A DNA stretch of 64,000 bases from sequence record LC768500.1; one strand, 5' to 3'. This document shows positions 2,998 to 21,295 of this stretch, piece by piece (the first letter of the stretch is position 1; the number at the start of each line of letters is the position of its first letter). A program made the position numbers and the translations under genes. The notes beneath the pieces were generated by a model that did not search any database, was not told the origin of the DNA, and saw nothing but the letters and a program-made list of their open reading frames with translations.

Positions 2998-5136
2998 ATG
3001 ACCACACCTACCCAATTACCGATTCCCAGCAATAACTTGCTGGATTCGAGATTTAACTTTGAAAAGCTCGATCAGATTGTTAATAGCGACGCGAACTATT
3101 ACCTTGATCGATTTGGTAAACAACGACTCACCTCGGCCGGATTGGAAGATTTAGCCAGACGATTATCTGAAGATTATGAATCCACCCTATCTAATCAGGA
3201 TGGGTATAAGAAAATGGGGATGGTGTCTGATTTTACTACTCTCAGAACTATCGCCCCAACAATGGAAGGTCAGCGCATTCTACTCAGGTCGGTCGACGCT
3301 GGTTCGAATAATGGATCGGGAGAGTTTATAGGACATTTAGGGAACGGTGGGGTTGACGACGGGGTTAATGTCGCGGTGGGATCCAACTTCTATTGGGAGA
3401 GACTTTCGACTGATTTTGTTAAATCTTCTTCTATAGGTGATTACGCCCGGATTAACTCCTTTATTTCAGCCGGAAATAAGAAGATCACTGTCGATGCCGA
3501 TCTCAGCGGGTGGCTTAACGTCAAAAGTAACACCACGATAACTTTTAACCCATTGTGTCGGCTGATACCTGATACCGATGACAAAGTAGGTATAAGTATT
3601 AGAGGAGCCGCCCCAACCTCCTATGTTAATCTAGCTACTGATGCATTAGGGATAGATGGCTCAATTACCACCACTAATGACGTTTTTAACATTGGCGATT
3701 GGTTGGAAATTAGATCCAACAAAATTCTTCCCGGCGCGAATTTTTATCAGGTTAAGCAATCTGTTTTACGCAAAGTGCTTCGTAAAACACAAAATGGAAA
3801 TGGAACTTGGACATACCGTCTCCACAGTAGTTTAGGTTATAACTTTAACGTCAGCGACGGTGCTTCCGCTGGGGTTGCGACAGTATTGGAAAATATTGTT
3901 ATCGATGGGGCTAACTTAAATAAAGACAATTTCACCAATATCTTCACCATAGGGATAAACTGTTATTACGTTTATAACCTCACTATAAAAAATATCAACC
4001 TATTCGGAACAAAAGTAAAGGATTCTGCCTCAGACACTCCAGGAAGATCCGGAATAAAACTGTATAATTGCGTTAACGTTAGAATCGATAATGTGAACGC
4101 CTCTTATATAGGGTGGTATGGTGTAGAGGTTATGGGATGCAGTGAAAACGTAGATGTAAATCGTTTATACGGCGTGGATTGTCGACATACCGTTTCCATG
4201 AACTGGATCGAATCTGGTGACCTTTATGGCGGACCTATGTGGGTTTCGGTAAGGAACTCAGCAAGTCACGCTGCAAGATTAAGTGGGTTTGACACTCATG
4301 ATCTAGGAAAGGGGATCGCATTTATTAATTGTCAGAGCTTCGATTCCGGCGACGATGGATTCCAAGTAAGGGCGATGGACACCGTTCTAATCGATTGTCA
4401 TGCTGAAGGATCGACACTTGATGGGTTCGGCGGAGCTACTGGCGCAAAGAACAGCAAATTAGTAAACTGTTCTTTCAACTACAACGTCAGATACGGAATT
4501 AACTTAGGTTATGAAGGTGGTATTGTTATCGACTGTGACGTCGATAATAACGGTTACATGGGGATTTGTACCATCGGCGGACTTATCCAAGGAGGCTCGG
4601 TCACCAATAATTATCCGGCTGCTATCGATATAGGTGCCGGATTTAATGCCGCCCAAACCGATCTCAAAATCGATGGTGTTAGAATGCCCTCTTCGACCGC
4701 CCAGACAAAAATTTTGAGTTTTGCTGGTGACGCGGTAGCCGCTAACAACAAACCTGAGCTGGTCAGAATGGAAAATTGTTACGTTCCTGGTTACGGAAGA
4801 GATTGGGCCCGACTGGTATCGTTCACCGTCCAACCTTTACCTCCGGTGCTTAATAATAATCTACTTACTTCCAGCTTAACCTCCCCTGGAAAAATAAGCG
4901 GGCAAGTCCAATTATCTGCAGGGACGGCCACGGTAACAACCACAGAGGTTTTCTCACAACTTGGTAGCGGCGCAAATGTTTTAAAATACTCATCGCAGAT
5001 TAAGTTGAAACCTATCGCTCGTTCTGCCAATATAGGCGCTCATTATGTTTCAGCAATCAACAACGGGACGTCCTTTGTAATCAATTCAACCAATTCCTCG
5101 GATGGCTCGACCATTTATTGGGAAATAACACTTTAA
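2998..5136 (+). CDS. tailspike/depolymerase 1 (beta-helix)
   Basis: Anchor motif PTQxxIPS..FNxEKxD..VNSD..DRFG; parallel beta-helix-like repeats. Confidence 0.85.
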   Translation: MTTPTQLPIPSNNLLDSRFNFEKLDQIVNSDANYYLDRFGKQRLTSAGLEDLARRLSEDYESTLSNQDGYKKMGMVSDFTTLRTIAPTMEGQRILLRSVDAGSNNGSGEFIGHLGNGGVDDGVNVAVGSNFYWERLSTDFVKSSSIGDYARINSFISAGNKKITVDADLSGWLNVKSNTTITFNPLCRLIPDTDDKVGISIRGAAPTSYVNLATDALGIDGSITTTNDVFNIGDWLEIRSNKILPGANFYQVKQSVLRKVLRKTQNGNGTWTYRLHSSLGYNFNVSDGASAGVATVLENIVIDGANLNKDNFTNIFTIGINCYYVYNLTIKNINLFGTKVKDSASDTPGRSGIKLYNCVNVRIDNVNASYIGWYGVEVMGCSENVDVNRLYGVDCRHTVSMNWIESGDLYGGPMWVSVRNSASHAARLSGFDTHDLGKGIAFINCQSFDSGDDGFQVRAMDTVLIDCHAEGSTLDGFGGATGAKNSKLVNCSFNYNVRYGINLGYEGGIVIDCDVDNNGYMGICTIGGLIQGGSVTNNYPAAIDIGAGFNAAQTDLKIDGVRMPSSTAQTKILSFAGDAVAANNKPELVRMENCYVPGYGRDWARLVSFTVQPLPPVLNNNLLTSSLTSPGKISGQVQLSAGTATVTTTEVFSQLGSGANVLKYSSQIKLKPIARSANIGAHYVSAINNGTSFVINSTNSSDGSTIYWEITL

Positions 5137-5193
5137 CCTTTGCTGGATGGTGATTGGTCGACGCCGGTCTAAAACTAATTTGTTAGGATCATT

Positions 5194-5229
5194 TAAAATC
5201 CAACCGGTCTTAAGACCGGTTGGATTTTA
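5194..5229. repeat. perfect 36 bp loopless palindrome overlapping TATG
   Basis: TAAAATCCAACCGGTCTTAAGACCGGTTGGATTTTA equals its own reverse complement. Confidence 0.85.
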
Positions 5230-5270
5230 TGCTTACCGATATTTCAACCTTCCTGACCCGAGGAATAGCA

Positions 5271-7502
5271 ATGACTTTACCAACGCAAAAACCTATTCCG
5301 AGTTCATCCATAACTGATCAATTATTTAATGCCGAAAAGATAGATCAGGTTGTTAACTCGGATGAACTAGAATATTCCGATCGTTTCGGAAAGAAACGAT
5401 TCACCTTTTCAGGATTATACAACGTTGTGCAGAATTGGATCAGCAGTTTGGGTTCCAGTTCAGGGGCGTCAGCCGTAGGTCTTAGCCAGGGCGGGACGGT
5501 TCAGGCCGGCCTCTATAACGTTGTTAATGTCGAACAATTTGCTTATCTCAATATTTCAGATGATGATTGGGGTCCGGCTTTTAGAGGGGCCAGGGATAAA
5601 GCAATTGAGATATCGGCTCCGGCGGTTACTTTTAAAGGTCACTACAAAATAAAAGTAAGCTCCGGCCCGACCACTCACACCCTGCCTTTCGACGACGGAA
5701 CTTACGATACAAGAAGAACTGGCGAAGTTCTACTTTCTCCAGAAACCTTGAACACAATGCCTGTGGGATTGGAATGGCCTTCCGGACTCTCCCTGAAATC
5801 AGAAGGGATCGGAAACAACTCAATTACTTTTGATTGGGATAATACCACTGTTGGGTTGTCTCAGGGGATTGGGATCTGTATCAGGGTCAGAAACTGGGAC
5901 GGAACTTATCTTGCTAAGGCCGGCTCAGTTAATCGCATGAATAGCGATATAGCCAATGTGGAGTTTGATGGGTTTAGCGTAAATAACGCCTTTATCGGAA
6001 TACTGGCTGATGGTATCGTGGGATCGGTCAGTTGGGGCAGCCTCCAGTTTAAGAAATGTTTCTTACCTATGACTTGGCAGGGCGCCGACAGATGCACGAT
6101 TAAGAAACTGAGATTTACAGATTGTCCGACTGGATTCTCGGTAGGTGGATGGTGGTTGACCCGTAACGACATCTCAGGATCCAATACCGGGCTGGGGGTT
6201 CCGCCTTATGTTGCTGGAACCGACGTGTACTGCATCGGCTGGATGGACTTCGTTAAAATTGAATCTCTGGAGTATTCTAATAGTACTTCGTTTGACAATT
6301 CCCCGTTGTTTGCCGCGGTAGATACTTTCTTCGACACCTATTTCTACAAAAGCGCGAACAGCGCTAGAACTGCTAGTGGTGGTCGATGCACTAATACAGG
6401 TCCTAACCTAACTAGCGCGAGTACGTTAGCGGCAGATTCTCCGTTCTTAGGTATCGCCGGGCGTGCTCACTCACAAATGGGGCGTTACCACCGAAATCAC
6501 ATCTTGAATGAAATTATTTCTCTCAAGACCTGGGGATGTTTCAGGGCATCGGTCCTTACCACGGCTAATGGAAACTCGGAGCTCAATGTCCCGGGGTGCA
6601 TAGTGGGTACCGCGTACATCGAACAGGCCTGTAAGGTCACGGTTGGCGGTGACGCCACGGTGGGGGGAAGTAATGACTTCGTTACATCAGGTAAAGATGT
6701 TTGGAAAGGGACAAAAACTTATTCTAAGTATTATGCTGGTGAAGGATCCGTAATCGTTAAAGATGGATGGTCTGTTAATAGTTTGGGTTTGTTCCCGTCG
6801 GCGCGGACTGTTGCAAGAAACGATAACGGGTATAATAACAGACTAAGAAGGACAATTGTCGACGATGGTACAGGGAAACCGGTCATACTCGAACAGCTTT
6901 CTGAAACGGTCTATGCGACCCCTCCTCAGAAATTTATTCCCAACGCCGTCGGTTCAGTGGACGATAAGTATTACTGGGTTCAGTTTGAGAAGAACGTTTC
7001 TTCAAAGGCCGCTCTTTATTCTGGTGTTCCGACAACGGCTGCGCAAACACCTATAACAGCTCCGGCGATTAAAGTAATAATGGAACGCCTAGGTAACCGA
7101 GTTAAATTAAAAATTAATTTGGATGCGTCAAATTATGCAGCTGGCGGCAGTAATCCGGTGGTAATCGGATTTACTGGGATTTATAAGCCCATTATTGCTA
7201 CGAGTTCCGATTATGCCCTCGGCGCATACGGCCCGGTGAGACCCATAATGGTCAGCACCAAAACATTTACGGTTACTGATTCTACTTCAGTGAGCCGGAC
7301 GTTTAGGATCGAGCCGGTAGCGCATCAAGCTGGGGTGTTCACTGATGGCGCCGGGGTTAATAACTACTACTTTGTTTTGCTCACCCAGCATCATACTTCT
7401 GACACTAATAGACTGTTGTGGTCGGATTTCACCGGTTCGTTATGTCAGATAGAAATAGAATATGATACGAATGACACTATCACTTCATCCAGCGTATTTT
7501 AA
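5271..7502 (+). CDS. tailspike/depolymerase 2
   Basis: Start moved to ATG 5271 (GAGGA SD; MTLPTQKPIPSS anchor); 743 aa. Confidence 0.85.
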   Translation: MTLPTQKPIPSSSITDQLFNAEKIDQVVNSDELEYSDRFGKKRFTFSGLYNVVQNWISSLGSSSGASAVGLSQGGTVQAGLYNVVNVEQFAYLNISDDDWGPAFRGARDKAIEISAPAVTFKGHYKIKVSSGPTTHTLPFDDGTYDTRRTGEVLLSPETLNTMPVGLEWPSGLSLKSEGIGNNSITFDWDNTTVGLSQGIGICIRVRNWDGTYLAKAGSVNRMNSDIANVEFDGFSVNNAFIGILADGIVGSVSWGSLQFKKCFLPMTWQGADRCTIKKLRFTDCPTGFSVGGWWLTRNDISGSNTGLGVPPYVAGTDVYCIGWMDFVKIESLEYSNSTSFDNSPLFAAVDTFFDTYFYKSANSARTASGGRCTNTGPNLTSASTLAADSPFLGIAGRAHSQMGRYHRNHILNEIISLKTWGCFRASVLTTANGNSELNVPGCIVGTAYIEQACKVTVGGDATVGGSNDFVTSGKDVWKGTKTYSKYYAGEGSVIVKDGWSVNSLGLFPSARTVARNDNGYNNRLRRTIVDDGTGKPVILEQLSETVYATPPQKFIPNAVGSVDDKYYWVQFEKNVSSKAALYSGVPTTAAQTPITAPAIKVIMERLGNRVKLKINLDASNYAAGGSNPVVIGFTGIYKPIIATSSDYALGAYGPVRPIMVSTKTFTVTDSTSVSRTFRIEPVAHQAGVFTDGAGVNNYYFVLLTQHHTSDTNRLLWSDFTGSLCQIEIEYDTNDTITSSSVF

Positions 7503-7517
7503 CATTTAAGGTGTGAT

Positions 7518-9704
7518 ATGACACTCCCAACACAAAACGCCGTTCCTAGTTCAGCTAAGAACGACCAGCTCTTTAATGCTGAGAAGATAGACCAGGTCGT
7601 TAATAGCGACGACCTCCAATATACTGACCGTTTCGGTAAGAAGCGATTTACTTTTACCGGGCTTTACAATATCATCCAGAATTGGATGGGTGGCATTAGT
7701 GGGCTCACCGGAGCAAACAACGTAGGGACGTTATCTGGTCTGTCCGTTCAGTCCGAATTGATTGGAGTACAGTCGGTAGAAGCTTTGCGATCACTTGAAC
7801 CGACTTATACGGATCAGAGAGTAAAGGTTTTGAGATCATCCCCCACCGGGGTTATTTTGAATCACGACGTTTACTATGATTCATCCGATAAAACTTCATC
7901 GGATAACGGATACTCGGTCTTTGTTACTCCCAATGGGAATAGGTGGAAGACCGATATTACCAACGGGTATAACCCATTATTTTTAATAGGGCAGGAAGGG
8001 TACACTGACATATCGTCTGCGATTAACAAAATCGCCTATGATCTGGCGGTACGGTGGGGTAATAATAAAGGCGTAATAGACTTCTGCACCACTATAAGGA
8101 TTCCGGGTAAGTTATTTGGTCAAACACGATATAACGTGACCGGACCTATCCATATCCCGTCGTTCGTTTCCCTAAGCATGGACGTTGACACATACTTTGA
8201 TTACTATACCGTGACTAACACAGACGGGATTATTATCGATAATAGTTATTTCCCGATGCTGTTAGACTCGGCGTACGATCCGTCTACTGCAGCCAGACCA
8301 AGATCAGTCCTATTATGGGAAGCGTCCAGAGAAGTCTTTATTGGCGGGAGACTCATCTTAACCCACCCTATAGGGTCGTCAAGAACATCTAATACCGGAA
8401 TAACGATAGGGAATACCGCTAGCGGATTCATAGATGTCAGAGGGTGTAATTTAAACAATTTTGAATGTTTTGGATTTTATTTCGGGATAAAAATAAATCC
8501 AATTGATGTTTATATCAACTCATTCTCCCGATTCCATTTAGGCCGCAACTATAACGCTGTTGCGGTTTTAGGAGATACAAAGACTAACGCCGGGGAAAAA
8601 TTTAATTTCAGTAACGCCACGATCTCCGATTCAGATTCCGACTTAATTTACATTGAGAATAACGGATTTGAATTGTTCTTTTCTGACGTGTCCTTAGACT
8701 ATCCAACAGGTGATCTAGTAAAAATCACCAAACTCGGTAATGCTTACGTCTCTTTCAATCAGTGCCATATTGAAGGCGTCCAGGGCATGTTAGTGAATGT
8801 AACAGGTTCTACTCTTTTTCCAAAATACGGAAAGAGAATCGTATTTTCGAATTGCATGATTGATATTTCTTCAGGGCAAAGTACCTGGAACAGAACTTGG
8901 TTCTTCTCCTCAACCATCAATACTTTCGTAATGGTGGATAAAACAACCAGGTTCTGGCCATCGACCGCTACGCTCAATTCGAGTAAAACCGCGTATCATT
9001 CTCTTATTAATAACGGTTCTCCAGCAAATAACGCCATTACTTTAGATTACCAATTATCAGACGAAGACCTTATTGACGCATCTACCTTTGTCCTGGGTCA
9101 GTTTAAGCCGGTAGGTGTCAACAAGAGGGTTATAAGTACCAATTCTTATTCCGGTACCGTCGGGAACGCCTACACTGGAGGGAGTTCTTCCACTGATTCT
9201 TGGGGTTGGTATATAGTCAACGGATCGTGGACTTATGCTTCAGCCGATGCATCCGATGGCGATGGTTTGCAGGCGATTTCTTTAACCTCGGACGATGCGA
9301 CTAAAAGCTTTTTCGTAATGTGTTCGCTACCGTGGAACACATTACCTCAAGAGAAATTTAGAGCGCTGGGCGCCATTAAGGTGTATAGCGGGTATACCGG
9401 CTCGGTAAACGTTTCTTGTCTAGTCGAGGCTCATAGTTTGCTGACAATGAACAGTACAGCAGTGGCCGATAATGTGATAGCGACTACTTACAGTCCGGCG
9501 GTAGATGTAGCGGCATTGGCCGCTGCGAATTCCAGGGTCGGTATGTTCCAAGGTTTCTGCACGCAAGCGGCCCAGGTTAACTCATATAGTAATTCTACTC
9601 ACCCGTTACAATTTGTTAGAGTAGGGTTTAAAATAACTGGATTCACTGGAACGATTGAATTGAAGTTACCGACGGTAACCAGTCATAGACTGCTGACAGC
9701 TTAA
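7518..9704 (+). CDS. tailspike/depolymerase 3
   Basis: Same anchor; beta-helix-like core. Confidence 0.85.
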   Translation: MTLPTQNAVPSSAKNDQLFNAEKIDQVVNSDDLQYTDRFGKKRFTFTGLYNIIQNWMGGISGLTGANNVGTLSGLSVQSELIGVQSVEALRSLEPTYTDQRVKVLRSSPTGVILNHDVYYDSSDKTSSDNGYSVFVTPNGNRWKTDITNGYNPLFLIGQEGYTDISSAINKIAYDLAVRWGNNKGVIDFCTTIRIPGKLFGQTRYNVTGPIHIPSFVSLSMDVDTYFDYYTVTNTDGIIIDNSYFPMLLDSAYDPSTAARPRSVLLWEASREVFIGGRLILTHPIGSSRTSNTGITIGNTASGFIDVRGCNLNNFECFGFYFGIKINPIDVYINSFSRFHLGRNYNAVAVLGDTKTNAGEKFNFSNATISDSDSDLIYIENNGFELFFSDVSLDYPTGDLVKITKLGNAYVSFNQCHIEGVQGMLVNVTGSTLFPKYGKRIVFSNCMIDISSGQSTWNRTWFFSSTINTFVMVDKTTRFWPSTATLNSSKTAYHSLINNGSPANNAITLDYQLSDEDLIDASTFVLGQFKPVGVNKRVISTNSYSGTVGNAYTGGSSSTDSWGWYIVNGSWTYASADASDGDGLQAISLTSDDATKSFFVMCSLPWNTLPQEKFRALGAIKVYSGYTGSVNVSCLVEAHSLLTMNSTAVADNVIATTYSPAVDVAALAAANSRVGMFQGFCTQAAQVNSYSNSTHPLQFVRVGFKITGFTGTIELKLPTVTSHRLLTA

Positions 9705-9765
9705 TCGGCCGCTGGTAGATCGTTTCTTATTCTGGTTAGCCGGCGTCTTCTTCCGTTTACTAGGT

Positions 9766-9789
9766 TATCGGGCTTTTAAAGGCCCGATA
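9766..9789 (+). terminator. hairpin after tailspike 3
   Basis: TATCGGGC/GCCCGATA stem. Confidence 0.55.
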
Positions 9790-9855
9790 GTTATAATTGA
9801 TGGACGGGTGTAGCGACCGAATCTCTTTAGTCATTTTGGTATTTCAATCATTAAT

Positions 9856-9886: not shown

Positions 9887-9896
9887 GAGTCTTTCA

Positions 9897-12169
9897 ATGA
9901 CACAGCCAACTAAGAATCCTATTCCCAGTGGGAATATATTAGATCAAATTTTTAACGGGGAAAAGATCGACGAGGTGGTGAACAGCGATAATGAGCAATA
10001 CTCAGACCGTTTCGGTATTAAACGTTTCACAGTAACGGGACTTGCGAAGTTAGTTAAAGATCTTATTGCATCTATCTCCGGTGTGGGTGGCGCGGCTAAC
10101 GTAGGATTGGCTCAGGGAGGAAATATCCAACAGGCGATATCTTATATCACGCCTGAAATGTCAGGAATCGTCACCGGTGTCGGAAATGCGGATGACGACA
10201 CGTCAGCAATACAATGGGCTTTTAATCAAAACCTCCCCATCGTCTTTAACCCTAAAAAGGTTTACCACATAAATCCTGGGGTTATCACTCACGTCGGTGC
10301 TGTAGATGTCAAGGCCTCCACCGCTACCTTTGTTTCTGACGGTCCTGCTTTTGAGATCATAGATTGCGACGGTAGTCAATGGGACGGGGGTATTTTTGTT
10401 TCGCAAACTATTCCGTGGACCGTTGTGTACGATGCCGGGTTCAATGTGATAGAGTCCGGAAGATTGGGGTATGGTAGGATGCCTTATCAGGACAGCGGGG
10501 TCGATCCGAATTTTCTATATCAAAAAATAGCCTGCTCTTTAATTTTTAGATCGTCTGATCAGTCTGTGAAAGACGGACTTCTGGTTAAAAATATTAAAGG
10601 GAGTTACGCTAATATAGTCTGCGCTGGCTTTAAAAATACGGTTTTTGACAATTTAGAGATTAGAGGGGGGCTTTAGGGGCAGCTCTTCTTATCCTTAATG
10701 ATTGCGAACAACCGGTTCTTTCTGGTTTTGGGTGGAATGCGGGGGCGGATACAAGTAAAGGTAATAGTTTTAAATGGGGTAGAGGAACTAATCACATTAT
10801 TAAGAATTCGAAGTTTTTCGAATCCAGACAAATGGGTCTGGCCATTATGGGGTCGGATAATATAATATTATCCGATATTTGGACTTATGACAACGCCGAA
10901 TCCGGAATACAGACCGGTCAATATTCGGCAGCCTACCCCCAAGAATCAATAATTTCCAAACACATAACCCAAAAAGGATGTCTGTCGTGGGGCAACTATT
11001 ACGACGGGTTTGACCACGCCACCGTCACGTCTGGTGCCAACGGTCCTTATTTTGAAAAACACCTGAACATGATTGGTAACCAGGCGTTCAATAATAGAGC
11101 TACTGGGATGGTGGTCCAAGGAAACTTTTTACAAATTAATAATAATGAGTTCTCTGTTAACGGAACACACGGGGTTTCTATAAGAGATTCATCGGTTATA
11201 GATGTTTCCGACAATATCATGTACAAGAACGGAGCGATTTCCGGTGGGTATGGGTTGGTAGTTGTCGGGACCGATAGTTTGATTAAAGACAATACCATTA
11301 TTAACGACGAAACACTTGCAAACTCACATATTGTTAATATTTCCGTGGGTAATCAAGCAAGAAAAATTTTCGATGTTAAATTTATTACCTCCCTAATTTC
11401 AGTTCGTTCTTCCCCTACAATGGTTATTGGAAATGGTGTCGATATATCGTACACCAAAACAACTTCTAATGGAGCGGTTACATCCAGCGGTACAAAATCA
11501 AGTTTGGTTAAAGGGGATTTTGTCGCAGGAAAAACTAACAGTGAGTTTTACGATGATGAGTTTGGCGCTGTTCAGGCTTGGAAGCACCCTTATACCGGGT
11601 CGTATTTAAGATTAGGTCCCCTGGATACAGGCAGAACGACTAACGGGCCTTTTACAATAAGTTACAATAGGGGTAAAAACACAACTGCTCCTACTGGATA
11701 TTCTGATAACACAGGGATAGGGTCCACCGAATTAATATTTAATCCCACGTCGTTTATGCTGAATATCTATGCAGCCAATAGCCCGATAACCCCAGTCGTG
11801 GGTTACTCATTTAATACGACTAGTGTAAGACCAACGATTACCAATTTTGCTACTTTAGGAGAAAACAATTACCGGTTCAAAACTCTATATTTAAACTCCT
11901 TCGTTATTTCAGACTCAGGAATAATCCCTGAACAAACAAATATCGTTGATTTGGGTTCGGGCACAAAACGGATAAGAACAGGTTATTTTAACGCCCTCGA
12001 TCTTAGCACTTCGCCTAAAATAGGGAGTGGTGAAGCGGCGGTTATTGTTCAGCCTCCCGCGACTTCAACTTCGAATGGGACGAAGGGGCAGATTGCTTAT
12101 GATACCTCCTATATTTATTTGTGTGTTTCGGCCAATACCTGGATGAGATCACCATTATCATCTTGGTAA
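9897..12169 (+). pseudogene. tailspike 4 split by a 1-nt frameshift in a G6 run (phase-variable, pseudogene or sequencing indel)
   Basis: ORF 9897..10676 ends ...IRGGL-TAG; the frame of 10832..12169 is open from 10664; one extra G at 10665-10670 gives a single 757 aa ORF. Confidence 0.85.
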
Positions 12170-12178
12170 TAACATAAT

Positions 12179-12213: not shown

Positions 12214-12287
12214 TAATTTTATGCTGATCTAAATTCAGTAGACTTGCGCAAGTCTTTTATACTACATTCTTTTAAAGGAGTAACCTC

Positions 12288-14846
12288 GTGGCTACAACTC
12301 CAACTACGGGTGACATCCCCAGCAATGCTGCGGTGGACCTCAAGTTTAACTCGGAACAATTCGACCGAGTAATGAATTCTGACGATCTGACTTATACGGA
12401 TCGTTTTGGTAAAAAACGCATTACAATGAAAGGGGTTCAGGAACTCGCTAATGGCTTCCAGGATACTTTCACCAATCTGTTGGGTTCTCCCGACGGGTTT
12501 AAACTGATCGGCGGAGTAAAGTCTTTTGACACCCTGAGATCAACCCCAGTGAAAACCGAAGGTCAGCGTATTTTCCTCAAGTCTTACTATCAAGATGGAG
12601 TCGACGGCGGTGGGCTCTTCATAGGACACATCGGAACCAAGTTAGATGACTCCGGAACCGTTGCCCAGGGAGTTAACTACTACTGGGAGCGAGTTCTAGG
12701 CGGAATTACACCCACGGTAGAGATGTTCGGTTGCCCTAACAGCACGACTGTTGACGCCGGCCCTTATATCACTTTAGCGCTAGGAGTTGTTGGCGAAGTA
12801 CGTTTACAGGATAGAACGTATTACGTGGACTCGGCGGATATTCCATCGGGCAGCAGGATTGTTTCTTTGGGTGGGGCTGTGATAAGGCCGTTAACCTCCA
12901 ATGCTTCTGCTAAATTTAACCTAGGTTCTGGAAGAGAAAAAATAAGATTTGAGAATATTAAATTCTCTGATCCGGCCGGCCTCGTTACCAGTGAAGACGC
13001 CCTTTTAATAAATGCCGAAAGCATCACCGGATTGACTATTACCAATTGCACCTTTGAAGGTTTAAAGCAGCGTTGTGTTAGAGTTAGAAATGGTTCCGGG
13101 ATAAAAATTACCGATAACAAATTCAGAGGAAGTCTCCCGCATTCTCAATTAAGCGATGAAAGATCCGCTGAGATTTATCTGGTTGACACCCTAGCACACG
13201 TGATCGTCTCTAATAATCAGTTCTATGGGACCGACAGTGGGTTATGGGGGTCTAGAGAAATTGGGGTGTTTGTTCACGCGGTTACGTCAGGGGCGTATTG
13301 GAATGACGTGCATATCGTGTCCAACTACTTCGAAAACTATCGTCGGTTTGGTATAGGCGTGGGAACTCAGGATATAGGAACCCTAGACCAGTTATCAAAA
13401 AATGTATGGATTACCGAAAATACAATTATTAACTCCGGCCAAGAAGGGATCAAAATGAAAGCCGGGTCGATAGTCCATGTTGATAACAACACTGTCGACG
13501 GATTTGAAGGAATAATGGCTGAGGTGCCGGATTCCTTGAACGGCGGAATTTTCATGCAAATTAACGCCGAGTCTACTTGTAACGGCAACCGTATTTATGG
13601 GAAAAATAAGAAGTTATGGTCCGGTGCCGTAACTTCGGCCACTGGTACAACAGTTTCTCTTCCCACAAGTAACTGGACGACATATACGATATCAGCAACC
13701 CAAGGTAGCGGAGTCAGTACCATTGCCGGCAAGTATGTTTATATAAGTTCAGGAACTGGAGTGGGTCAGTGGCGCCGGATTTCTAGCTGGAACAGCACGA
13801 CCAATATGGCTACCGTCAACACCGCATGGACGACCGTTCCGGATACGACCAGCGTGATAGAAGTTTATAGCAACCCCTCCATGGGCATAAAGTATCGCGG
13901 GAATAACACGGGTGGGTCCACCTGGGCCGATAGTAGAACCGCAAGATGCTTCCAAAGCATGAACAACTATGTGGAAGGCTGCGAGGTGGGATTTGGGTTA
14001 TCCGAACCCCTTTTCAATTGCCAATTCGGCTCACTTCATGCCCAGAACTGTAGAGCGATACTAAAAACTTATTCTGGAACGCTGAAAACAACCCGCGGGA
14101 TTCAGTTCTTTGGACTGACGGGCCAGTATCTTGACTACCCGTCCACTGACAACTCATCCGCCATAACCTTTACAGACTGTAGCCAAATCGAAATACATGG
14201 CTTAAAAATTTCTGGAAGTTATTACGATGGGTTGAGGTTATCAAATGTCGACAACTTTAAAATTTTCGGCGGTGTTGTGGAAGGATGCGGGATGGGGGTC
14301 AGCGGTCGTTACGGCCTGGCTATTGCTGGTGGTGTGACTAACTTCGAATCACACGGTGTGACCTACGGCGGGGCCAATGCGGGAGCTGGACAAAGCTACG
14401 CCGCATTTTTCCAGAATACTAATAGCGGAATATCCTTCTTCGGCGGCAGTATGCTGGGTAACGTTGCGGGAGTGTTTAACCCAGGGTCGTCTGGAGCTCT
14501 GTATCCTCCAAGAGATACTGTCTTTAGCGGGGTAGCTGGGGCGGGTCAGATTAAGGGCGTGACTCTCGTAGATAATGCGTCCAAAGTAATTGTCCCCGGT
14601 ACTGATAAAGACACTGTTTTATTTAATACCGCGCTGACCGCGATTAGAACAGTAACTTTCTCCACAGCCTTTGTTGAAGATGGTTGCGTGTACACCATCT
14701 GTAGATCGGCCGCCGCCACGGGGAGTTTTGCTCTCAACGTAGTGACCGCGGTAGGAACACAAGCCCTCGCAGCAGGCTCCTACCTAAGAGTTATTTACTC
14801 GAGTACGCTAGGTTGGATTCCTGTTTCCTACGGTTTATTGAGTTAA
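12288..14846 (+). CDS. tailspike/depolymerase 5
   Basis: GTG start after AAGGAG; anchor; second domain (EGQRI..FIGH..YWER) shared with tailspike 1. Confidence 0.85.
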   Translation: MATTPTTGDIPSNAAVDLKFNSEQFDRVMNSDDLTYTDRFGKKRITMKGVQELANGFQDTFTNLLGSPDGFKLIGGVKSFDTLRSTPVKTEGQRIFLKSYYQDGVDGGGLFIGHIGTKLDDSGTVAQGVNYYWERVLGGITPTVEMFGCPNSTTVDAGPYITLALGVVGEVRLQDRTYYVDSADIPSGSRIVSLGGAVIRPLTSNASAKFNLGSGREKIRFENIKFSDPAGLVTSEDALLINAESITGLTITNCTFEGLKQRCVRVRNGSGIKITDNKFRGSLPHSQLSDERSAEIYLVDTLAHVIVSNNQFYGTDSGLWGSREIGVFVHAVTSGAYWNDVHIVSNYFENYRRFGIGVGTQDIGTLDQLSKNVWITENTIINSGQEGIKMKAGSIVHVDNNTVDGFEGIMAEVPDSLNGGIFMQINAESTCNGNRIYGKNKKLWSGAVTSATGTTVSLPTSNWTTYTISATQGSGVSTIAGKYVYISSGTGVGQWRRISSWNSTTNMATVNTAWTTVPDTTSVIEVYSNPSMGIKYRGNNTGGSTWADSRTARCFQSMNNYVEGCEVGFGLSEPLFNCQFGSLHAQNCRAILKTYSGTLKTTRGIQFFGLTGQYLDYPSTDNSSAITFTDCSQIEIHGLKISGSYYDGLRLSNVDNFKIFGGVVEGCGMGVSGRYGLAIAGGVTNFESHGVTYGGANAGAGQSYAAFFQNTNSGISFFGGSMLGNVAGVFNPGSSGALYPPRDTVFSGVAGAGQIKGVTLVDNASKVIVPGTDKDTVLFNTALTAIRTVTFSTAFVEDGCVYTICRSAAATGSFALNVVTAVGTQALAAGSYLRVIYSSTLGWIPVSYGLLS

Positions 14847-14854
14847 TTAATCCA

Positions 14855-14878
14855 AGAGGGAGATTTAGATCTCCCTCT
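14855..14878. terminator. hairpin between tailspikes 5 and 6
   Basis: AGAGGGAGAT-TTAG-ATCTCCCTCT. Confidence 0.5.
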
Positions 14879-14894
14879 ACCTAAAAGGTGAGTT

Positions 14895-16412
14895 ATGACT
14901 ACCCCAACTAATAACAATATACCGAGTAACTCGGTTCAAGACCGATTATTCAACGCAGAAAAATTTGACGAGTTTATCAACTCTAACAACACGTCTTTTA
15001 CAGACCGTCTTGGGATCAGCAGAACGACGTTAAACGGGATTAGACAAAACGTTTCTAATTGGATGACGTCGTTTTCCACTGAAAACGGGGCGGAGAATGT
15101 CGGATATAGAACCTCTAATGTGGGAGATGTTCTTTCCCGTATGAGGACAATGAGTGACTCGGGTCTTCCGCGTCCTTATCTGGGGTATTCTTCGACTAAC
15201 GACCTTGCTATTTTTACAGAGCAGGGCGCTCTTCGCGATACCGATCTTCTTTTGAATGGTTCGATCACCATAGGTAGGAAATTCCGTAGTATTCGCAGGC
15301 ACGCGACCGCATTGAGTTTACGAGGTGGCCGAGCTTCATCAGGAGATACTGGAGTCTTCAATGCTCAGGTTACGGGTGCGCAGAACGCCAGGGGCGTAGC
15401 TGCATATGGGTTGAATGATGGCGTAACATTATTTGCCGACGCCTTAGCTCCAGCACTGGAAGACTGGGAAACAGTTGATACTGCGTCATATACCGCCACG
15501 ACTGTTACGGTCAGCCCATCGGTGTATTCTTCTTTCCTGACCAACGCCCTAGTTGGTGACGTCATTCAGACACTCCACCCCACTAAATGTTGGGGGTTGA
15601 TTACCAGTATAAACAAAACCACTGGTGTGGTGACAGTTGATGAATGGGCGACAGCTGATGGGGCCACTCTAACACCGACTTCGGGCGTGGGGTTCAACGT
15701 CAACCTGATTAATAAAGTTTGGGCTATCAACGCCAACACTATCATTAACAGCAACTCTGCCGCCGATAATGCCGTAATATGCGAATTTGGGGCGGTGATC
15801 AATAAGTCTGGAGCTTCGCTAAACGGTATCGATATTCCGCTGCTCCAACAAAGCCTCTATGATGGTGTGGCTGGCGTACTGGTTCGCCCTGCGAGCACTT
15901 CAGCTAAAACATGGTTGTACGGTGTCCGTTCAACTAATAACAGAATGAACTTCTATGCGTCCGGCGCCACGTATAATAACTACGTATCGACCGGGTCTGC
16001 GCCAGTCGGAATAAGATTTTCTGGAATGCCCACTTATTCGATGGTGTTCAGCAAATCTTCCGATATGACAGATATGTCGTATGTTAACTCGACGATGATT
16101 TACGATGGATACGGTAGACGTCTGCGCAATATGACTAAGTACAGTGTGCTTACGACGAATACAACGCTGAATGCGCTCATTCCTTGTTATCTGATAAATG
16201 CAGCCGGGATAACTCTGACAATGCCGGCTATAAGTAATATGTCTTCAGGTCATTTTTACGAATTGAAGATACTTAGGGCTGGAACATACTATATCACCGC
16301 CAACGCCCAGGAAGTCAACGTAAGTGGTTACGCTACGTACCCTTTAACTGTCACCACCCCAACTAAAGTAGAGGTTTGGTACGATGGATCGACCTGGATA
16401 ATTGTTCCTTAA
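14895..16412 (+). CDS. tail fibre/tailspike 6
   Basis: Same anchor; beta-rich C-terminal tip ending YDGSTWIIVP. Confidence 0.8.
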   Translation: MTTPTNNNIPSNSVQDRLFNAEKFDEFINSNNTSFTDRLGISRTTLNGIRQNVSNWMTSFSTENGAENVGYRTSNVGDVLSRMRTMSDSGLPRPYLGYSSTNDLAIFTEQGALRDTDLLLNGSITIGRKFRSIRRHATALSLRGGRASSGDTGVFNAQVTGAQNARGVAAYGLNDGVTLFADALAPALEDWETVDTASYTATTVTVSPSVYSSFLTNALVGDVIQTLHPTKCWGLITSINKTTGVVTVDEWATADGATLTPTSGVGFNVNLINKVWAINANTIINSNSAADNAVICEFGAVINKSGASLNGIDIPLLQQSLYDGVAGVLVRPASTSAKTWLYGVRSTNNRMNFYASGATYNNYVSTGSAPVGIRFSGMPTYSMVFSKSSDMTDMSYVNSTMIYDGYGRRLRNMTKYSVLTTNTTLNALIPCYLINAAGITLTMPAISNMSSGHFYELKILRAGTYYITANAQEVNVSGYATYPLTVTTPTKVEVWYDGSTWIIVP

Positions 16413-16457
16413 CGATTTAACCAATATATGGACCATAAACCCATCTAGGGAAATATC

Positions 16458-16739
16458 ATGTCAGCCGAAAAACAAATTCTTCAACTTCAAGCTCAAATTT
16501 GCCACCTGCGTTTAGAAGGCGCCGAAGCCAAACGATACATCGCCGAGCTCGAATCGATTATCGCTAATAACGAATTGCAGCGTGTATCTATCGAGTTGGG
16601 TCGTATCGAGAAAGCCGAAGGTATGGAGAAAGATACCGCTCGGCAAGAAGAAGACGAGGCGGTGAACAAAGACATCGAAGATATCAAACGCGCAGAACGG
16701 GCTTCAGAAGAAACTCAGGCAGAAGAAGAACAGCAGTAA
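16458..16739 (+). CDS. small coiled-coil protein, possible tail-fibre assembly chaperone
   Basis: Heptad- and acid-rich; directly follows the array. Confidence 0.55.
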   Translation: MSAEKQILQLQAQICHLRLEGAEAKRYIAELESIIANNELQRVSIELGRIEKAEGMEKDTARQEEDEAVNKDIEDIKRAERASEETQAEEEQQ

Positions 16740-17120
16740 ATCCTTATAGTCAGTAGAATTGGGGGTATTTTTTAACTAACGTACCGTAGAGTTTGCCTCC
16801 AGAGCGTACGCTAAATTGGTTAATGTGAAGGTCCGATCTTTTGATTACACTGCCGATATGGGGTTCATTACTCAAGGCTGTAATTTTACAACCGTTACTA
16901 AGTGGGGTTTCCCTCAATTCGGGTCATTTGGTTTGGGTGAGAGGACTCAGCGAATGGATGCGATGGGCGCCGGCGCGGTAGCGGAATACATCAACACAGT
17001 TAATCAGGGTGTGTCGTTCAAAGCTTTAACAACTTACTCCGGGACATAATTCTAGTTATTTTCTACCCAGCCCTAATGCTATGAAGGTAAGGAGTTAACC
17101 CACACACAGCAGGTACTTAT

Positions 17121-17894
17121 ATGCATAATCGTAGTGTTAAGCGTGCTAACCGCGACGCTCGTCGCGAAGCAAGACGTCAAGATAAGTCCCAAAGTAGCCA
17201 ACTGAAACTGGTGGACAACAATTTCAGTGAAATAAATCTACCTCTTGCAAAAGCTGATCGGAGTAAGATTGAGCCGAAAACCCCAATGCAACAAAAATAT
17301 TGGAATGGGTTACACGCCCACGATGTCGTCATCGGTATTGGTGAAGCGGGTAGCGGTAAAACGTTCCTCCCGACTTGTTACGCTGCAGAACGTCTGCTGG
17401 CTAAAGACGTGGAAAAGATTATCGTTACACGACCAGTCCTACAGGCCGATGAAGATCTGGGTTTTCTCCCCGGGGATGTTAATGAGAAATTCGCACCTTA
17501 CTTCCGACCGGTCTACGATATCTTACTGAAACGCCTGGGTGGTGGAATGCTCAACTATTGCATGAAGCCTGGCGTGGAGAAAGTTGAAGTCGCCCCCTTT
17601 GCTTTTATGAGAGGTCGTACTTTTTCTGACTCAGTGGTGATTCTTGACGAAGCGCAAAACGTTACAGTTATGCAGATGAAAATGTTCATCACTCGTATGG
17701 GTGAGAACACTACGGTAATCATCAACGGCGACCTTACCCAGTGCGATCTTCCTAAAGGAGTTAAATCCGGTCTGGAAGATCTACTGGAGCGCATTGAACG
17801 AGATCCTGAAAATGGATTCCCGATTTATCGTTTCAATGCGGCTGATAGTGTGCGGTCAGATATTTGCTCCAAAGCCCTGAAACTTTATAAGTAA
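17121..17894 (+). CDS. phoH: PhoH family ATPase
   Basis: GEAGSGKT Walker A, LGFLPGD..EK, APFAFMRGRTF, ILDEAQN. Confidence 0.95.
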   Translation: MHNRSVKRANRDARREARRQDKSQSSQLKLVDNNFSEINLPLAKADRSKIEPKTPMQQKYWNGLHAHDVVIGIGEAGSGKTFLPTCYAAERLLAKDVEKIIVTRPVLQADEDLGFLPGDVNEKFAPYFRPVYDILLKRLGGGMLNYCMKPGVEKVEVAPFAFMRGRTFSDSVVILDEAQNVTVMQMKMFITRMGENTTVIINGDLTQCDLPKGVKSGLEDLLERIERDPENGFPIYRFNAADSVRSDICSKALKLYK

Positions 17895-17899
17895 ATTCT

Positions 17900-17936
17900 A
17901 ATAACTCCTACTCCCTTATCGGGAGTAGGAGTTATT
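17900..17936. terminator. CTCCTACT-family palindrome, copy 1
   Basis: 16 bp arms; 35 nt identical to 41330-41364. Confidence 0.8.
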
Positions 17937-17984
17937 TTAAACGCACCACGGTTATTTATGAACTTTTCATAAGAGACCGTAATC

Positions 17985-18452
17985 ATGAACCTCATGTACG
18001 ATAATTACTACGGAAAAGAAATACTTGGATTGGGTTTAGAGGGTGAAGTCATCACAATGCTAAATTTGGCGATGGCTGATATTAATCACTTCGCTAAGAA
18101 AAGCATTTCTAAAGATATCAACCCCTATCCGTTCAATCTGGAAGATTTTAAGCACAACCGTTTAAACGAACACTACTTCCTCGTTTTTGATGGGAAGAAA
18201 ATAGTGTCGATTCTATCCGTCGTTTACGCTTTAGAGCATCATCTCAAAATAGCTAAAATCTTTAACGTTTATACGTTACCGGAGTATCGCCATAAAGGAC
18301 TTGCTAAACGCAACCTAATCGCCGCTATCGTGTCGGCAAGATCAAATGGGTACATTGTGCAGTTAAACGTTTACAGGTCTAATAAAGCCGCTCAGAAGCT
18401 TTACAAGAGTCTCAAATTTAAACCTGTAGAATACACCATGCAGCTCGGTTAA
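17985..18452 (+). CDS. GNAT family acetyltransferase
   Basis: VYTLPEYRHKGLA acetyl-CoA motif A; N..A..LY..L.F. Confidence 0.85.
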   Translation: MNLMYDNYYGKEILGLGLEGEVITMLNLAMADINHFAKKSISKDINPYPFNLEDFKHNRLNEHYFLVFDGKKIVSILSVVYALEHHLKIAKIFNVYTLPEYRHKGLAKRNLIAAIVSARSNGYIVQLNVYRSNKAAQKLYKSLKFKPVEYTMQLG

Positions 18453-18560
18453 TTTTAACTACGTTATCGCCTTATTAGTAATGAAGAGAGAATACATTGT
18501 TTTAAACATCGGTTTGAAATAATACGTTCTCATTTTTAACACTAAGCGAAGGTAAATAAA

Positions 18561-19349
18561 ATGAAAGTAACTAAAGAACAATTGATTGAAGCTTTTAACC
18601 AAACAGTGGAAAAAGAAGAAATTGGTTTCAGTGATGGCAAAGAGAGGCTTAAACTGGTCTTAGACGACCCTAAGATGACCCCTCAGGAATTCGAGAATGT
18701 CGTGGGTTGGCTAACCGAGATCTTTTTCTCAGGAACCAATCTGCTGCATATTAATAACCAAACCTCATTAACAGGTGTTCTTTTCTTAAATAACGTTACA
18801 AGTCATTCCAAAGAACTCATTCTAACTAACTCTAACTTGCATAATACTAGTATTTCGGATAAAGGTCGGTGTGAGATTATTCATTCTAAGTTACAAGAAA
18901 GCTCGATTGCCTCTTATGAGGGAATTGGATCAAAGGTGATTGTTAAGTATAGCGACGTTATTGCCTGCCATTTAAACGGTGTTTTTATCGATCACGCTAT
19001 TGTCGTTTGTAGGGAAATTCGCGAAAGTATCACCCTGGAGAATTGCCATATTGCGCACTCAAGACTCTACTTTGGTCCATGTGAGATAAAAAATAAAAAG
19101 TTCTCGTCAGTTATCATCGACGCGGTTAATTTTACCGGTGATTATTTCTGTATTGGGTTAAATGGAGAAAACGCAGTAGGATATGTCAATGGAACTGAAA
19201 AACTAATTGTGGTGGGCGAAAAGAGATACAATCCCGGCAGTTGGGAAGAACAATTCGTTAATAAAGAACAAAATTTATTCATTAAAATGATGAATCAAAA
19301 GAAATTAGAAATGATGAATATGTTCTTCGATAGTTTGGCGTTTAAATAA
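18561..19349 (+). CDS. hypothetical protein with solenoid-like repeats
   Basis: 262 aa, repeating I/L-x-x-S/C-x-I pattern. Confidence 0.6.
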   Translation: MKVTKEQLIEAFNQTVEKEEIGFSDGKERLKLVLDDPKMTPQEFENVVGWLTEIFFSGTNLLHINNQTSLTGVLFLNNVTSHSKELILTNSNLHNTSISDKGRCEIIHSKLQESSIASYEGIGSKVIVKYSDVIACHLNGVFIDHAIVVCREIRESITLENCHIAHSRLYFGPCEIKNKKFSSVIIDAVNFTGDYFCIGLNGENAVGYVNGTEKLIVVGEKRYNPGSWEEQFVNKEQNLFIKMMNQKKLEMMNMFFDSLAFK

Positions 19350-19355
19350 TAAAGT

Positions 19356-19389
19356 TTTACTCTACCTCGGTTTCCCGAGGTAGAGTAAA
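19356..19389. terminator. bidirectional terminator between convergent genes
   Basis: 15 bp arms TTTACTCTACCTCGG/CCGAGGTAGAGTAAA. Confidence 0.8.
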
Positions 19390-19486
19390 GAGAGCCATCT
19401 GGATTATTAATGTCTAAGGAATATAACCGAGGAACCCAGCAAAAGAAACACCCAAAAATCAGCTAGTGAGTGTTCTATCGTTCTTT

Positions 19487-21295
19487 TTACGCTAATACCC
19501 AGCAAGCTCTAGATGAGTTCCAAATGAATTCATAGGTTCCCGCAGAAGTTAAAGCGACGCTAGTTAACGACCCACCTCCAGGGCCGTAAATTGTATCGGT
19601 CCCGTTAGGGGTTACCGTGTACGTCCCACCTGATAGGATTTTCTTAAATCTTATCATAAACCCTGAACTCAACCCAGTCCCAGACGGAAGGTTGAAAGAT
19701 GAGGCGGCGGAACTCAAACAGTAATAAACGTTACTCAATCCGGTCGTAGGGAAAGTATAACCGGTATTAATTTCAGTATAAGTAACGGATACTTGAGATA
19801 ATCCAGCTAATGAGACTTTACCTGCCGCGAACGTGATTAACTGGGTAGGCGCCGCAGTTCCTGAACCACCCCAGATTCCAGAAGGAGAGAAACTCAATCT
19901 TGGGTAAGCCTCACCCGTCACTTTTAACGAATACATTGCTGTAGCCGTGGACGTAGCTCCCTGTTGAATAGGCTGAACGGCATCCATGACTTTTATGTTA
20001 GCGAATTCGTAGTTTCCTCTGTCAGGGGAATTGGTAATCGCCACCGCGGCGGCGTCAGATGGGGACCCGGTAGCGACGTTATTGGTGAAGTAATCATTAA
20101 CGCCATTCCACATTGTCGAAGAACCTGACGCGAAAGCCATGCAATAAGCTACTCGTGTGCTAGACGTGCCAGTGTTGTAATTGAAATGGGAGTTGGAGGT
20201 AATAATCTTTCTCACGTTACCTGTGAACTTCAGGTTGGCGTAACCATTAGTGGCGATCTCCGCAGCTGCAGACCCCCATCCGTTGGCAAAGAACGTGTTG
20301 GCGATTTGTTCGTGGATTTCAGTACCGCCAGGAGTGTTAAATAAAATCCCTGACTTAGCGTTAGAGTTAACGTGGTTCCTCACCATGCTCGTTACGGTAG
20401 CATTAGGTCCGAATACCACGCCGTTTCCGTTAGACTCGTAAGATTCACTGAGTACCATACGGAAACTTGCACAGTTAGCGTAAATATTATCCGATCCACT
20501 ACGCCCGATAGAAGAAGATAACAATTGCCAATCCGCGCCATTGGCGATATACAAGCAGGTGTTGTAACAGTATAGTATCGAAGAGTATTGCAGATACCCC
20601 ATGTTACGGTTTTTCCCAGCGTAAACGCCGTACCCAGAGAAATTACCAATACCTGAGTTTATCAACTGTACACCGATTGAATAAACACTGGCATCGGCTA
20701 GATATATCGCCGTGAGAGGTCCGCTCGTCGGCGCGTTTAGAGCATAAACCGACCCTGGGTTAGACCAATCCCCCTCAATCCTAATATTTTCAAAAGTAGG
20801 GGAAGCCGACCGGGAACAGTAGAACATGTTACCGGTCGTCCCTGGTTTGGCGGTAATACGAGCTGAACTACGTTTACCAACACCTTCAAAATAAACGTTA
20901 CTGGAAATATTTAAATTCCCAATTATGTAGTTCTTACCCGCGCTAAGTTTTATTCTAGCTGTAGAGGAAGCGTTAATAGCGGCCTGCATGGCTGCTGTAT
21001 CATCAGTTACACCATCGCCCTTTGCCCCATAAGCTTCTGGAACAACGTAGGTCAAGTAATCCTGAACGTGTCCCCCTTGGCTAACGCCGATGTTACCAGC
21101 GCCAGTATTCCCAGTTAGGTTAGAGAAGAAGGTTTGGATAGAGGTTACGATCCCCTTCATTGTGAAACGCTTGGCTCCAAAACGATCGTCGTATGTCTCG
21201 TTATCACTATTAACGATCTCGTCGAGTTTCTCGGTGTTAAACCTCACGTCTATTGCAGTACTACTGGGTATATTATTTTGTGTTGGAGTTGTCAT
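19487..21295 (-). CDS. tailspike/depolymerase 7 (pectate-lyase-like beta-helix), inverted
   Basis: Same anchor; YGAKGDGVTDDTAAMQAAIN motif. Confidence 0.88.
   Translation of the reverse strand: MTTPTQNNIPSSTAIDVRFNTEKLDEIVNSDNETYDDRFGAKRFTMKGIVTSIQTFFSNLTGNTGAGNIGVSQGGHVQDYLTYVVPEAYGAKGDGVTDDTAAMQAAINASSTARIKLSAGKNYIIGNLNISSNVYFEGVGKRSSARITAKPGTTGNMFYCSRSASPTFENIRIEGDWSNPGSVYALNAPTSGPLTAIYLADASVYSIGVQLINSGIGNFSGYGVYAGKNRNMGYLQYSSILYCYNTCLYIANGADWQLLSSSIGRSGSDNIYANCASFRMVLSESYESNGNGVVFGPNATVTSMVRNHVNSNAKSGILFNTPGGTEIHEQIANTFFANGWGSAAAEIATNGYANLKFTGNVRKIITSNSHFNYNTGTSSTRVAYCMAFASGSSTMWNGVNDYFTNNVATGSPSDAAAVAITNSPDRGNYEFANIKVMDAVQPIQQGATSTATAMYSLKVTGEAYPRLSFSPSGIWGGSGTAAPTQLITFAAGKVSLAGLSQVSVTYTEINTGYTFPTTGLSNVYYCLSSAASSFNLPSGTGLSSGFMIRFKKILSGGTYTVTPNGTDTIYGPGGGSLTSVALTSAGTYEFIWNSSRACWVLA

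Follow-up and report, generated by a model that had tools for sequence, protein, structure and literature searches.

Attachment of a tailspike to its virion through a short helical anchor is known at atomic resolution from the Shigella siphophage Sf11, in which residues 4-59 of three chains of the tailspike gp13 and one adaptor helix of the distal tail protein (DTP) gp17 pack together as a helical bundle, the closest salt bridges between the two proteins lying at gp17 E147 and E152 (PMC12724387; PDB 9OCC). For Klebsiella phages a modular scheme of anchor, conserved peptides and T4gp10-like domains has been described, in which the anchors of different phage groups are without similarity to each other (Latka et al. 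2019, PMC6872550), and branched multi-depolymerase systems are established in jumbo phages, phiKp24 among them (Ouyang et al. 2022, as related in PMC13385381). Here we describe an array of seven tailspike genes (TS1 to TS7) in a window of 64,000 nucleotides from sequence record LC768500.1, the Klebsiella jumbo phage phiKp_32, in which every tailspike carries an anchor of the Sf11 type. We propose, with a rough probability of 0.6, that these tailspikes plug into a strip of six sockets at the C-terminus of phiKp32_0940, a large protein encoded elsewhere in the genome.

The record is 251,460 bp in length and comes from sewage in Japan; position 1 of the window is position 124,001 of the record, to which the window is 100% identical. 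Relatives of phiKp_32 are the jumbo phages Miami, KPN8 and YC1, Raoultella phage VB_ZK_P1 and 'Stenotrophomonas' phage BUCTxx100, with about 84-94% DNA identity where alignable. The deposited annotation of the region lists 14 genes, all of them 'hypothetical protein' but phoH. An earlier note made from the letters of this DNA had described seven open reading frames (ORFs) with a common N-terminal motif as tailspikes, and the array is real and was correctly described: seven anchor-bearing ORFs lie between 2998 and 21295, six on the plus strand and one on the minus strand, and the 18-20 columns that are invariant within the first 48 residues of all seven fit the motif that had been given. The locus is best explained as the set of receptor-binding proteins with which a Miami-like Klebsiella jumbo myophage is armed, seven trimeric tailspikes or depolymerases whose polysaccharide-cleaving bodies differ. 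A jumbo phage with many depolymerases is of an ordinary kind; what is new here is a testable variant of attachment.

The anchor is about 50 residues in length and begins at residue 1 or 2 of each tailspike. A profile of the first 56 residues finds exactly seven sites in the 251-kb genome (E 5e-34 to 4e-30), and the sole strong match of the anchor profile to a solved chain in the PDB is 9occ chain G, that is, Sf11 gp13 residues 2-62 (E 9e-23). Used as single queries, five of six tailspikes (TS1, TS2, TS3, TS5 and TS7) match Sf11 gp13 as well, with E between 1e-8 and 1e-11, while TS6 as a single query against the PDB gave no Sf11 gp13 match. At the level of sequence, the anchors can thus be assigned to the Sf11 gp13 type of N-terminal tailspike anchor. 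A fold similar to that of 9OCC residues 4-59 is predicted by an AlphaFold2 (AF2) monomer model of TS1 residues 1-150, which has an extended stretch at 1-13, a helix at 14-29, a hairpin at 34-44 and a second helix at 46-65, with a predicted local distance difference test (pLDDT) score of 64-87 over residues 11-60 and a shallow alignment.

The seven anchors are distant from one another in DNA sequence. Those of TS2 and TS3 differ at 11, 3 and 32 first, second and third codon positions respectively over 52 codons, which bears out an earlier observation that the two differ mainly at third positions, and identity among the paralogues is only 46-71%; together these values argue for old duplications followed by purifying selection on the anchor protein. 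The same earlier note had called the anchor typical of enterobacterial tailspikes, a description that has to be replaced: in a tblastn search the TS1 anchor was found in 236 phage records. Of these, nearly all belong to siphophages (36-50 kb; Salmonella, Klebsiella, Escherichia and Shigella) in which the anchor occurs once, so that it is the single-copy anchor of Sf11-like siphophages of about 45-50 kb. Multi-copy arrays occur among these records only in Miami-like jumbo phages.

The counterpart of the anchor in Sf11 can be followed in the same way. Residues 146-154 of gp17, at the end of the adaptor helix, read D-E-V-V-N-R-E-L-P and span both E147 and E152. In the Sf11-like siphophages KpV2811 and pYD38-A the DTP is a protein of 156 residues whose C-terminal end comes directly after the same motif, and in each case about 22 kb of sequence contain no further copy. 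Siphophage DTPs differ in the upstream half of the adaptor helix, which in KpV2811 contains two prolines; for this reason we regard D-x-x-[IVM]-N-x-x-x-P as the conserved core of the helix. In phiKp32_0940, a protein of 1071 residues encoded at record positions 102005-105220 (19 kb upstream of the window), this motif is present six times, at residues 964, 984, 1003, 1022, 1041 and 1060. The copies are 19-20 residues apart, all fall in the last 108 residues, none is found elsewhere in the protein, and a motif profile searched against the six-frame translation of the phiKp_32 genome returns these six sites only. A candidate partner gene with the adaptor-helix motif is therefore encoded in the genome. 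Small ORFs upstream of the array (8-2847) were also considered as adapters and were rejected, the motif being absent from them.

Several features of phiKp32_0940 are consistent with a role in the tail. It is the third of three paralogues, it adjoins a baseplate assembly gene, and its counterpart is labelled minor tail protein in both YC1 and BUCTxx100. A hidden Markov model (HMM) built from the jumbo phage repeats alone gives the helix ends of the three DTPs ranks 1, 2 and 5 in a set of 663 ORFs, and it also recovers the helices of the anchors (L-D-x-x-V-N), from which it would seem that the socket resembles the plug. No relative of phiKp32_0940 was found in the PDB. The repeat tail, 97-100% identical across all six Miami-like phages, has been appended to the protein, as PHROG 14667 and gp116 of Pseudomonas phage EL both end exactly at its start; no anchors were found in phage EL. 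In Erwinia phage Joad the relative of phiKp32_0940 has a different C-terminal domain, and no real anchor was found there, only one weak partial profile match in a 111-aa ORF. A word search of 5.8 billion proteins located the repeat tail in only three clusters. The divergent one of these, P0005, with 58% identity in the tail region and 46% overall, keeps the D, N and P in five repeats, the sixth being truncated; its contig stops at the gene, and an IMG/VR scan with P0005 gave no match. The DNA of the six repeats is only 50% alike, which indicates that they are old and have been maintained at the protein level. Aeromonas jumbo phage CF8 has four divergent anchors and two copies of the motif, one at the C-terminal tip of a 0940-like paralogue and one near the N-terminus of the next, each within one copy of a duplicated 25-residue segment (L021, record 135409-143318); a profile search found no socket in CF8, both copies being seen by regular expression only.

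In the arrangement we propose, the N-terminal helices of each tailspike trimer would wrap one short helix of the phiKp32_0940 tail, and a single scaffold chain, presumably placed at the periphery of the virion, would hold trimers side by side like a power strip, up to six of them given the six repeats. Scaffold and anchors would remain fixed while the bodies were exchanged by recombination just behind the anchor, and such exchange would retarget the phage to new capsule types.

A number of considerations weigh against this arrangement. The contact between anchor and socket in phiKp_32 is one that we infer from the identity of the motif, and both the presence of phiKp32_0940 in the virion and its copy number are presumed. 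The three siphophage DTPs, being homologues, count as one observation, and the co-occurrence of repeat tail and anchors in jumbo phages is likewise a single evolutionary event. The E-values of the HMM for the DTP helices (0.1-4.9) are no better than the noise in phage T1 (0.5), so that the HMM is not significant alone and its weight lies in the position of its matches, although T1 is a weak negative control because it has a lambda-like tail tip. The AF2 model of phiKp32_0940 is unusable (pLDDT 31), although every motif core but one coincides with a short helix in it, and the remaining core, in the fifth repeat, with a helical turn of three residues. The residues aligned to the Sf11 salt-bridge acids E147 and E152 are not conserved across the six repeats, which permit helices of about 13-18 residues against about 30 in Sf11. 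Finally, the numbers do not agree, as tailspikes range from 4 to 9 per phage with sockets constant at six (the anchors of phiKp_32 number seven), and in CF8 four anchors stand against two copies of the motif.

The shortness of the motif, HMM scores at the level of noise, the loss of the Sf11 salt-bridge residues from the repeats and the mismatch of socket and tailspike numbers would all fit if the anchors docked on some other baseplate or fibre protein and the acidic tail of phiKp32_0940 were instead a handle for assembly or a chaperone, a spacer or a contact between paralogues; the motif near the N-terminus of the next paralogue in CF8 could mark just such a paralogue-to-paralogue joint. We consider this other partner improbable, at about one chance in four, since no site outside the repeat tail matches the adaptor motif in the 251-kb genome, the motif falls exactly on the tightest contact of the solved complex, and the repeat tail is confined to the lineage that bears the anchors.

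Comparison of the array across the six phages covered 41 anchors and 39 full-length genes. There are seven anchors each in phiKp_32, YC1, BUCTxx100 and VB_ZK_P1 (one of the last a stub), nine in KPN8 and four in Miami. The 41 anchors fall into about six groups in the conserved order A-B-C-D-E, then phoH and its neighbours, then F, and anchor identity is 86% within these classes and 57% between them. Four of the classes (A, B, D and E) form clades, but B divides into two subgroups and neither C nor F is resolved, so that 'six' is a soft number. The 39 full-length anchored genes carry bodies of 34 clusters, and within a class the similarity across phages ends at residue 45-66, except in class D, where it ends at about residue 133, the anchor and second domain being near-identical to that point in six phages (identical in the first 64-75 residues compared). 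The comparison of array content among relatives that had been suggested earlier thus gives anchors conserved in position and bodies that have been exchanged, and the idea of the anchor as a recombination handle gains support both from the 34 bodies among 39 genes and from the break just behind the anchor. Bodies also move between anchor classes, as in one contig of another run, where the body of TS4 follows an anchor resembling those of class B (loose end before 9999). Import of TS1 as a whole gene from the K1 siphophage KpV2811 was considered and rejected, only the anchor being in common. In VB_ZK_P1 a 118-aa ORF (L006:14017-14373) consists of little beyond a class E anchor, a leftover plug lacking any body. 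In KPN8_74 the deposited start (6413 versus 6236, L004) lies 177 nt downstream of the anchor ATG, so that the annotated protein is without its anchor. Within the Miami array, gp093 (L002:5139-6818) is a tail protein without an anchor that follows gp092 after a gap of 3 nt, and it may ride on this neighbour rather than on a socket.

Six position-conserved anchor classes and six non-identical sockets invite the thought that docking is addressed, each of the classes A-F having its own socket among R1-R6 to give an ordered comb of six enzyme positions, perhaps through a short helix-helix code such as the residue before the anchor FN read against the residue after the socket D. The classes are old, their third codon positions being saturated; the identity of each socket is retained in the 58%-identical tail homologue; and at the anchor position matching Sf11 K19, classes A, D and F have a basic residue where B, C and E have a hydrophobic one, the socket position matching E147 being acidic in two sockets (R2 and R4) and otherwise hydrophobic. 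We nevertheless regard the one-to-one comb as unlikely, and the residue code as a similarly doubtful proposition. Class B splits in two and C and F are not resolved as clades; in KPN8 classes A, B and E are each represented by two genes, and Miami, in which B and C are missing, retains the six sockets at 99% identity; the tally of basic against acidic positions is 3 against 2, and with DNA identities of about 90-94% the six phages are too close for conservation to prove selection. Since the same six sockets are retained in relatives whose tailspikes number from 4 to 9, sharing of sockets, or at most a partial selectivity, seems to us the likelier arrangement. The docking had been pictured in the earlier note as independent, equivalent and without a branched adapter. 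Of this, the lack of branching agrees with a Pfam search in which no T4gp10-like branching domain was matched at E<=0.01 in any of the eight tailspike ORFs; the equivalence does not sit well with about six old, position-conserved anchor classes, and the likeliest partner, one scaffold with six non-identical sockets, would itself be a comb-like adapter.

One of the seven tailspikes is interrupted, a point absent from the earlier description. TS4 loses its frame by one base at a run of six G residues (G6): its 259-aa ORF ends at 10676, and a second frame, open already from 10664, continues into the annotated 445-aa ORF. Phage BaqKoxi has an intact TS4 homologue of 984 residues that aligns through the junction, with IRGG as the last residues matched in the first part and ALG as the first in the second frame, which places the break in the G6 run. 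At this point one extra base is present in 95-99% similar contigs of three further public runs, two of them metagenomes and one another isolate: a G in runs X2 and X3 and an A in X6, while the probable source run X1 has G6. The allele was read from contigs, and minority variants or homopolymer error may be involved. With TS4 frameshifted, at most six full tailspikes would be made in phiKp_32. The suggestion that some of the seven are soluble depolymerases released at lysis, or dead remnants, and not parts of the virion draws on this frameshift, on the anchor-only stub of VB_ZK_P1 and on the lack of a recognisable enzymatic family in TS3 and TS6, but is very improbable given that all seven keep an intact anchor under purifying selection, that tail attachment is the only known role of this anchor (PMC12724387), and that TS4 is intact in three related assemblies.

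Behind the anchors the genes differ (Table 1). TS1 is a K1-lyase homologue by sequence and a predicted K1 capsule lyase: it matches Pfam K1-lyase_Rider (PF24149; 7e-35, 119.7 bits) and K1-lyase_C (PF24146; 1e-21, 77.7 bits), each with a cut-off of 27 bits, as well as the K1-specific depolymerase 9k4a (9e-113, residues 119-712) and the K1 lyase 7w1c (3e-91) in the PDB, and the same gene is present in KPN8 (L004:3963). Residues 232-428 of TS2 match a KN1-specific depolymerase (PDB 9m4d/9m4c, E 1e-21), and in PHROG the protein matches phrog_22560, tail protein (2e-61); its frame is open already from a TTG at 5220, the anchor beginning at ATG 5271. TS3 matches phrog_9823, tail fiber (5e-16), but gave no Pfam match and its PDB matches are confined to the anchor. 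The second part of TS4 reaches 24.3 bits for Pfam Beta_helix, just below the cut-off of 25.9 bits, and TS5 matches the same family at 1.5e-10, with residues 45-154 matching the depolymerases 7vyv and 7lzj. TS6, present as the same gene in YC1, had neither a Pfam nor a PDB match past the anchor; its structural neighbours in Atlas are tailspike-like, with TM 0.53-0.57 for a query model of low confidence. TS7 matches Pect-lyase_RHGA_epim (1.7e-7) and phrog_17312 (4e-31), and its residues 46-133 match phi92 gp150 (PDB 6e0v). A beta-helix or pectate-lyase-like centre is accordingly indicated above the Pfam cut-off in TS1, TS5 and TS7 and by the KN1 depolymerase match in TS2.

Between anchor and body, TS1 and TS5 share a second domain (EGQRI..FIGH..YWER; 45% identity over residues 2-136), a module that recurs at residues 130-300 of other depolymerases (phrog_4250, PDB 6tgf and 7vyv). 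A neck with the motif GAxxVG, resembling the beginning of phi92 gp150, is found in TS2, TS3, TS4 and TS6 and, as GAGNIG, in TS7. Pairwise BLASTP of the seven bodies gave no similarity past about residue 136. Most of what had been read from the sequence at first is upheld by these comparisons, namely the depolymerase character of the genes (through the K1-lyase match of TS1, the KN1 depolymerase match of TS2 and the beta-helix or pectate-lyase-like matches of TS4, TS5 and TS7), the domain common to TS1 and TS5, and cores and tips without sequence similarity to each other by BLASTP. The neck had been assigned to TS2, TS3, TS4 and TS7, correctly in these four, with TS6 omitted although it has the motif.

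Table 1. Positions in the window of the tailspike genes, their N-terminal modules and neighbouring features
Feature	Position	Strand	Remarks
TS1	2998-5136	+	712 aa; class A anchor, second domain at about aa 58-140, K1-capsule-lyase-like body
TS2	5271-7502	+	743 aa; class B1 anchor, GAxxVG neck, body partly KN1-depolymerase-like
TS3	7518-9704	+	728 aa; class B2 anchor, GAxxVG neck, body without named relative
TS4	9897-12169	+	class C anchor; split into 9897-10676 (259 aa) and 10832-12169 (445 aa)
TS5	12288-14846	+	852 aa, GTG start; class D anchor and second domain, beta-helix body
TS6	14895-16412	+	505 aa; class E anchor, no body family recognised
TS7	19487-21295	-	602 aa; class F anchor, phi92 gp150-like neck, pectate-lyase-like body
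Anchor of TS1	2998-3147	+	first 50 codons
Anchor of TS2	5271-5420	+	first 50 codons
Anchor of TS3	7518-7667	+	first 50 codons
Anchor of TS4	9897-10046	+	first 50 codons
Anchor of TS5	12288-12440	+	first 50 codons
Anchor of TS6	14895-15044	+	first 50 codons
Anchor of TS7	21146-21295	-	first 50 codons
Second domain of TS1	3169-3417	+	sequence comparison
Second domain of TS5	12453-12755	+	sequence comparison
G6 run, frame loss in TS4	10665-10670	+	comparison with contigs of other runs
Promoter-like 10-mer ATTTTATGCT, TS1	2915-2924	+	exact match
Promoter-like 10-mer ATTTTATGCT, TS2	5224-5233	+	exact match
Promoter-like 10-mer ATTTTATGCT, TS5	12216-12225	+	exact match
Acidic ORF	16458-16739		93 aa; directly after TS6
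PhoH	17121-17894		between TS6 and inverted TS7
GNAT acetyltransferase-like	17985-18452		between TS6 and inverted TS7
Repeat-rich gene	18561-19349		262 aa; between TS6 and inverted TS7
DUF2829-like gene	21409-21684		small; flanks the array
TnpB gene	23036-24172		flanks the array

In the 64 kb the 10-mer ATTTTATGCT has only three exact copies, which lie 45-85 nt ahead of the starts of TS1, TS2 and TS5, and each of the five relatives has it in front of its genes of classes A and D; its counterpart at TS7 is ATTTTATGAC. It looks like a promoter element specific to tailspikes. The ORF that follows TS6 encodes a highly acidic, coiled-coil-like protein, is found in the same place in YC1 and could be an assembly factor. 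TS7 stands apart from the other tailspikes, beyond phoH, the GNAT gene and one further gene, and this block of three genes between TS6 and the inverted TS7 is present in all six phages.

We found no description in the literature of Miami-like tailspike arrays, of this anchor in myophages or of the repeat of phiKp32_0940. The body of TS1 (residues 108-712) is homologous over its full length, Rider and C-terminal domains included, to the K1 capsule lyases of Klebsiella phages (PDB 7W1C, 9K4A; PF24149, PF24146); TS1 differs from these in having the Sf11-type anchor and the second domain in place of their N-terminus. With Sf11 itself the array shares the homologous anchor (about 50-60% identity over 50 residues) and the motif D-x-x-V-N-x-x-x-P at the end of the adaptor helix, and, if our model holds, a tailspike trimer plugged onto one helix of a tail protein. 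Sf11, however, has a single tailspike gene and, with one socket on each DTP chain, six trimers per siphophage tail, whereas phiKp_32 is a jumbo myophage with seven anchored genes, an anchor contact that is predicted, and six putative tandem sockets appended to a large neighbour of the baseplate genes that is unrelated to DTP. A helical plug known at atomic resolution from a small siphophage is here multiplied sevenfold, with a candidate scaffold bearing six tandem sockets to match. If correct, the model would explain how the baseplate of Miami-like phages can stay unchanged while presenting 4 to 9 capsule specificities, why the exchange of bodies takes place exactly behind residue 45-66, and how one attachment pair could pass between the siphophages and the jumbo myophages. 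Modular host recognition could then be studied on a minimal pair, a plug of about 50 residues with a socket of about 19, and the pair would suggest a way in which a single virus mounts and swaps many enzymes of host recognition.

The multi-depolymerase Klebsiella jumbo phages phiK64-1/RaK2 and phiKp24 resemble phiKp_32, as far as the cited accounts describe them, in having many capsule depolymerases per virion, conserved N-terminal modules and exchangeable enzymatic parts. The models given in those accounts combine a single anchor domain with several T4gp10-like branching domains and with short conserved peptides specific to each group, while in phiKp_32 all seven proteins have the same full anchor and none a T4gp10-like Pfam match. 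This anchor is common to siphophages and jumbo myophages, unlike the group-specific anchors of Latka et al. (PMC6872550), and an anchor pair that crosses these groups would run counter to the finding that such anchors are unrelated. Phages G7C (gp63.1/gp66) and CBA120 (TSP1-4) are similar in that tailspikes are joined through N-terminal modules in one receptor-binding organelle; there, in the account given in PMC6872550, attachment is by T4gp10-like, beta-rich domains of one tailspike that bears the others, whereas in phiKp_32 helical plugs would sit on the repeat strip of a non-enzymatic scaffold. Attachment of many tailspikes on one virion has been solved only for branching of the T4gp10 type, and phiKp_32 offers a testable alternative to it.

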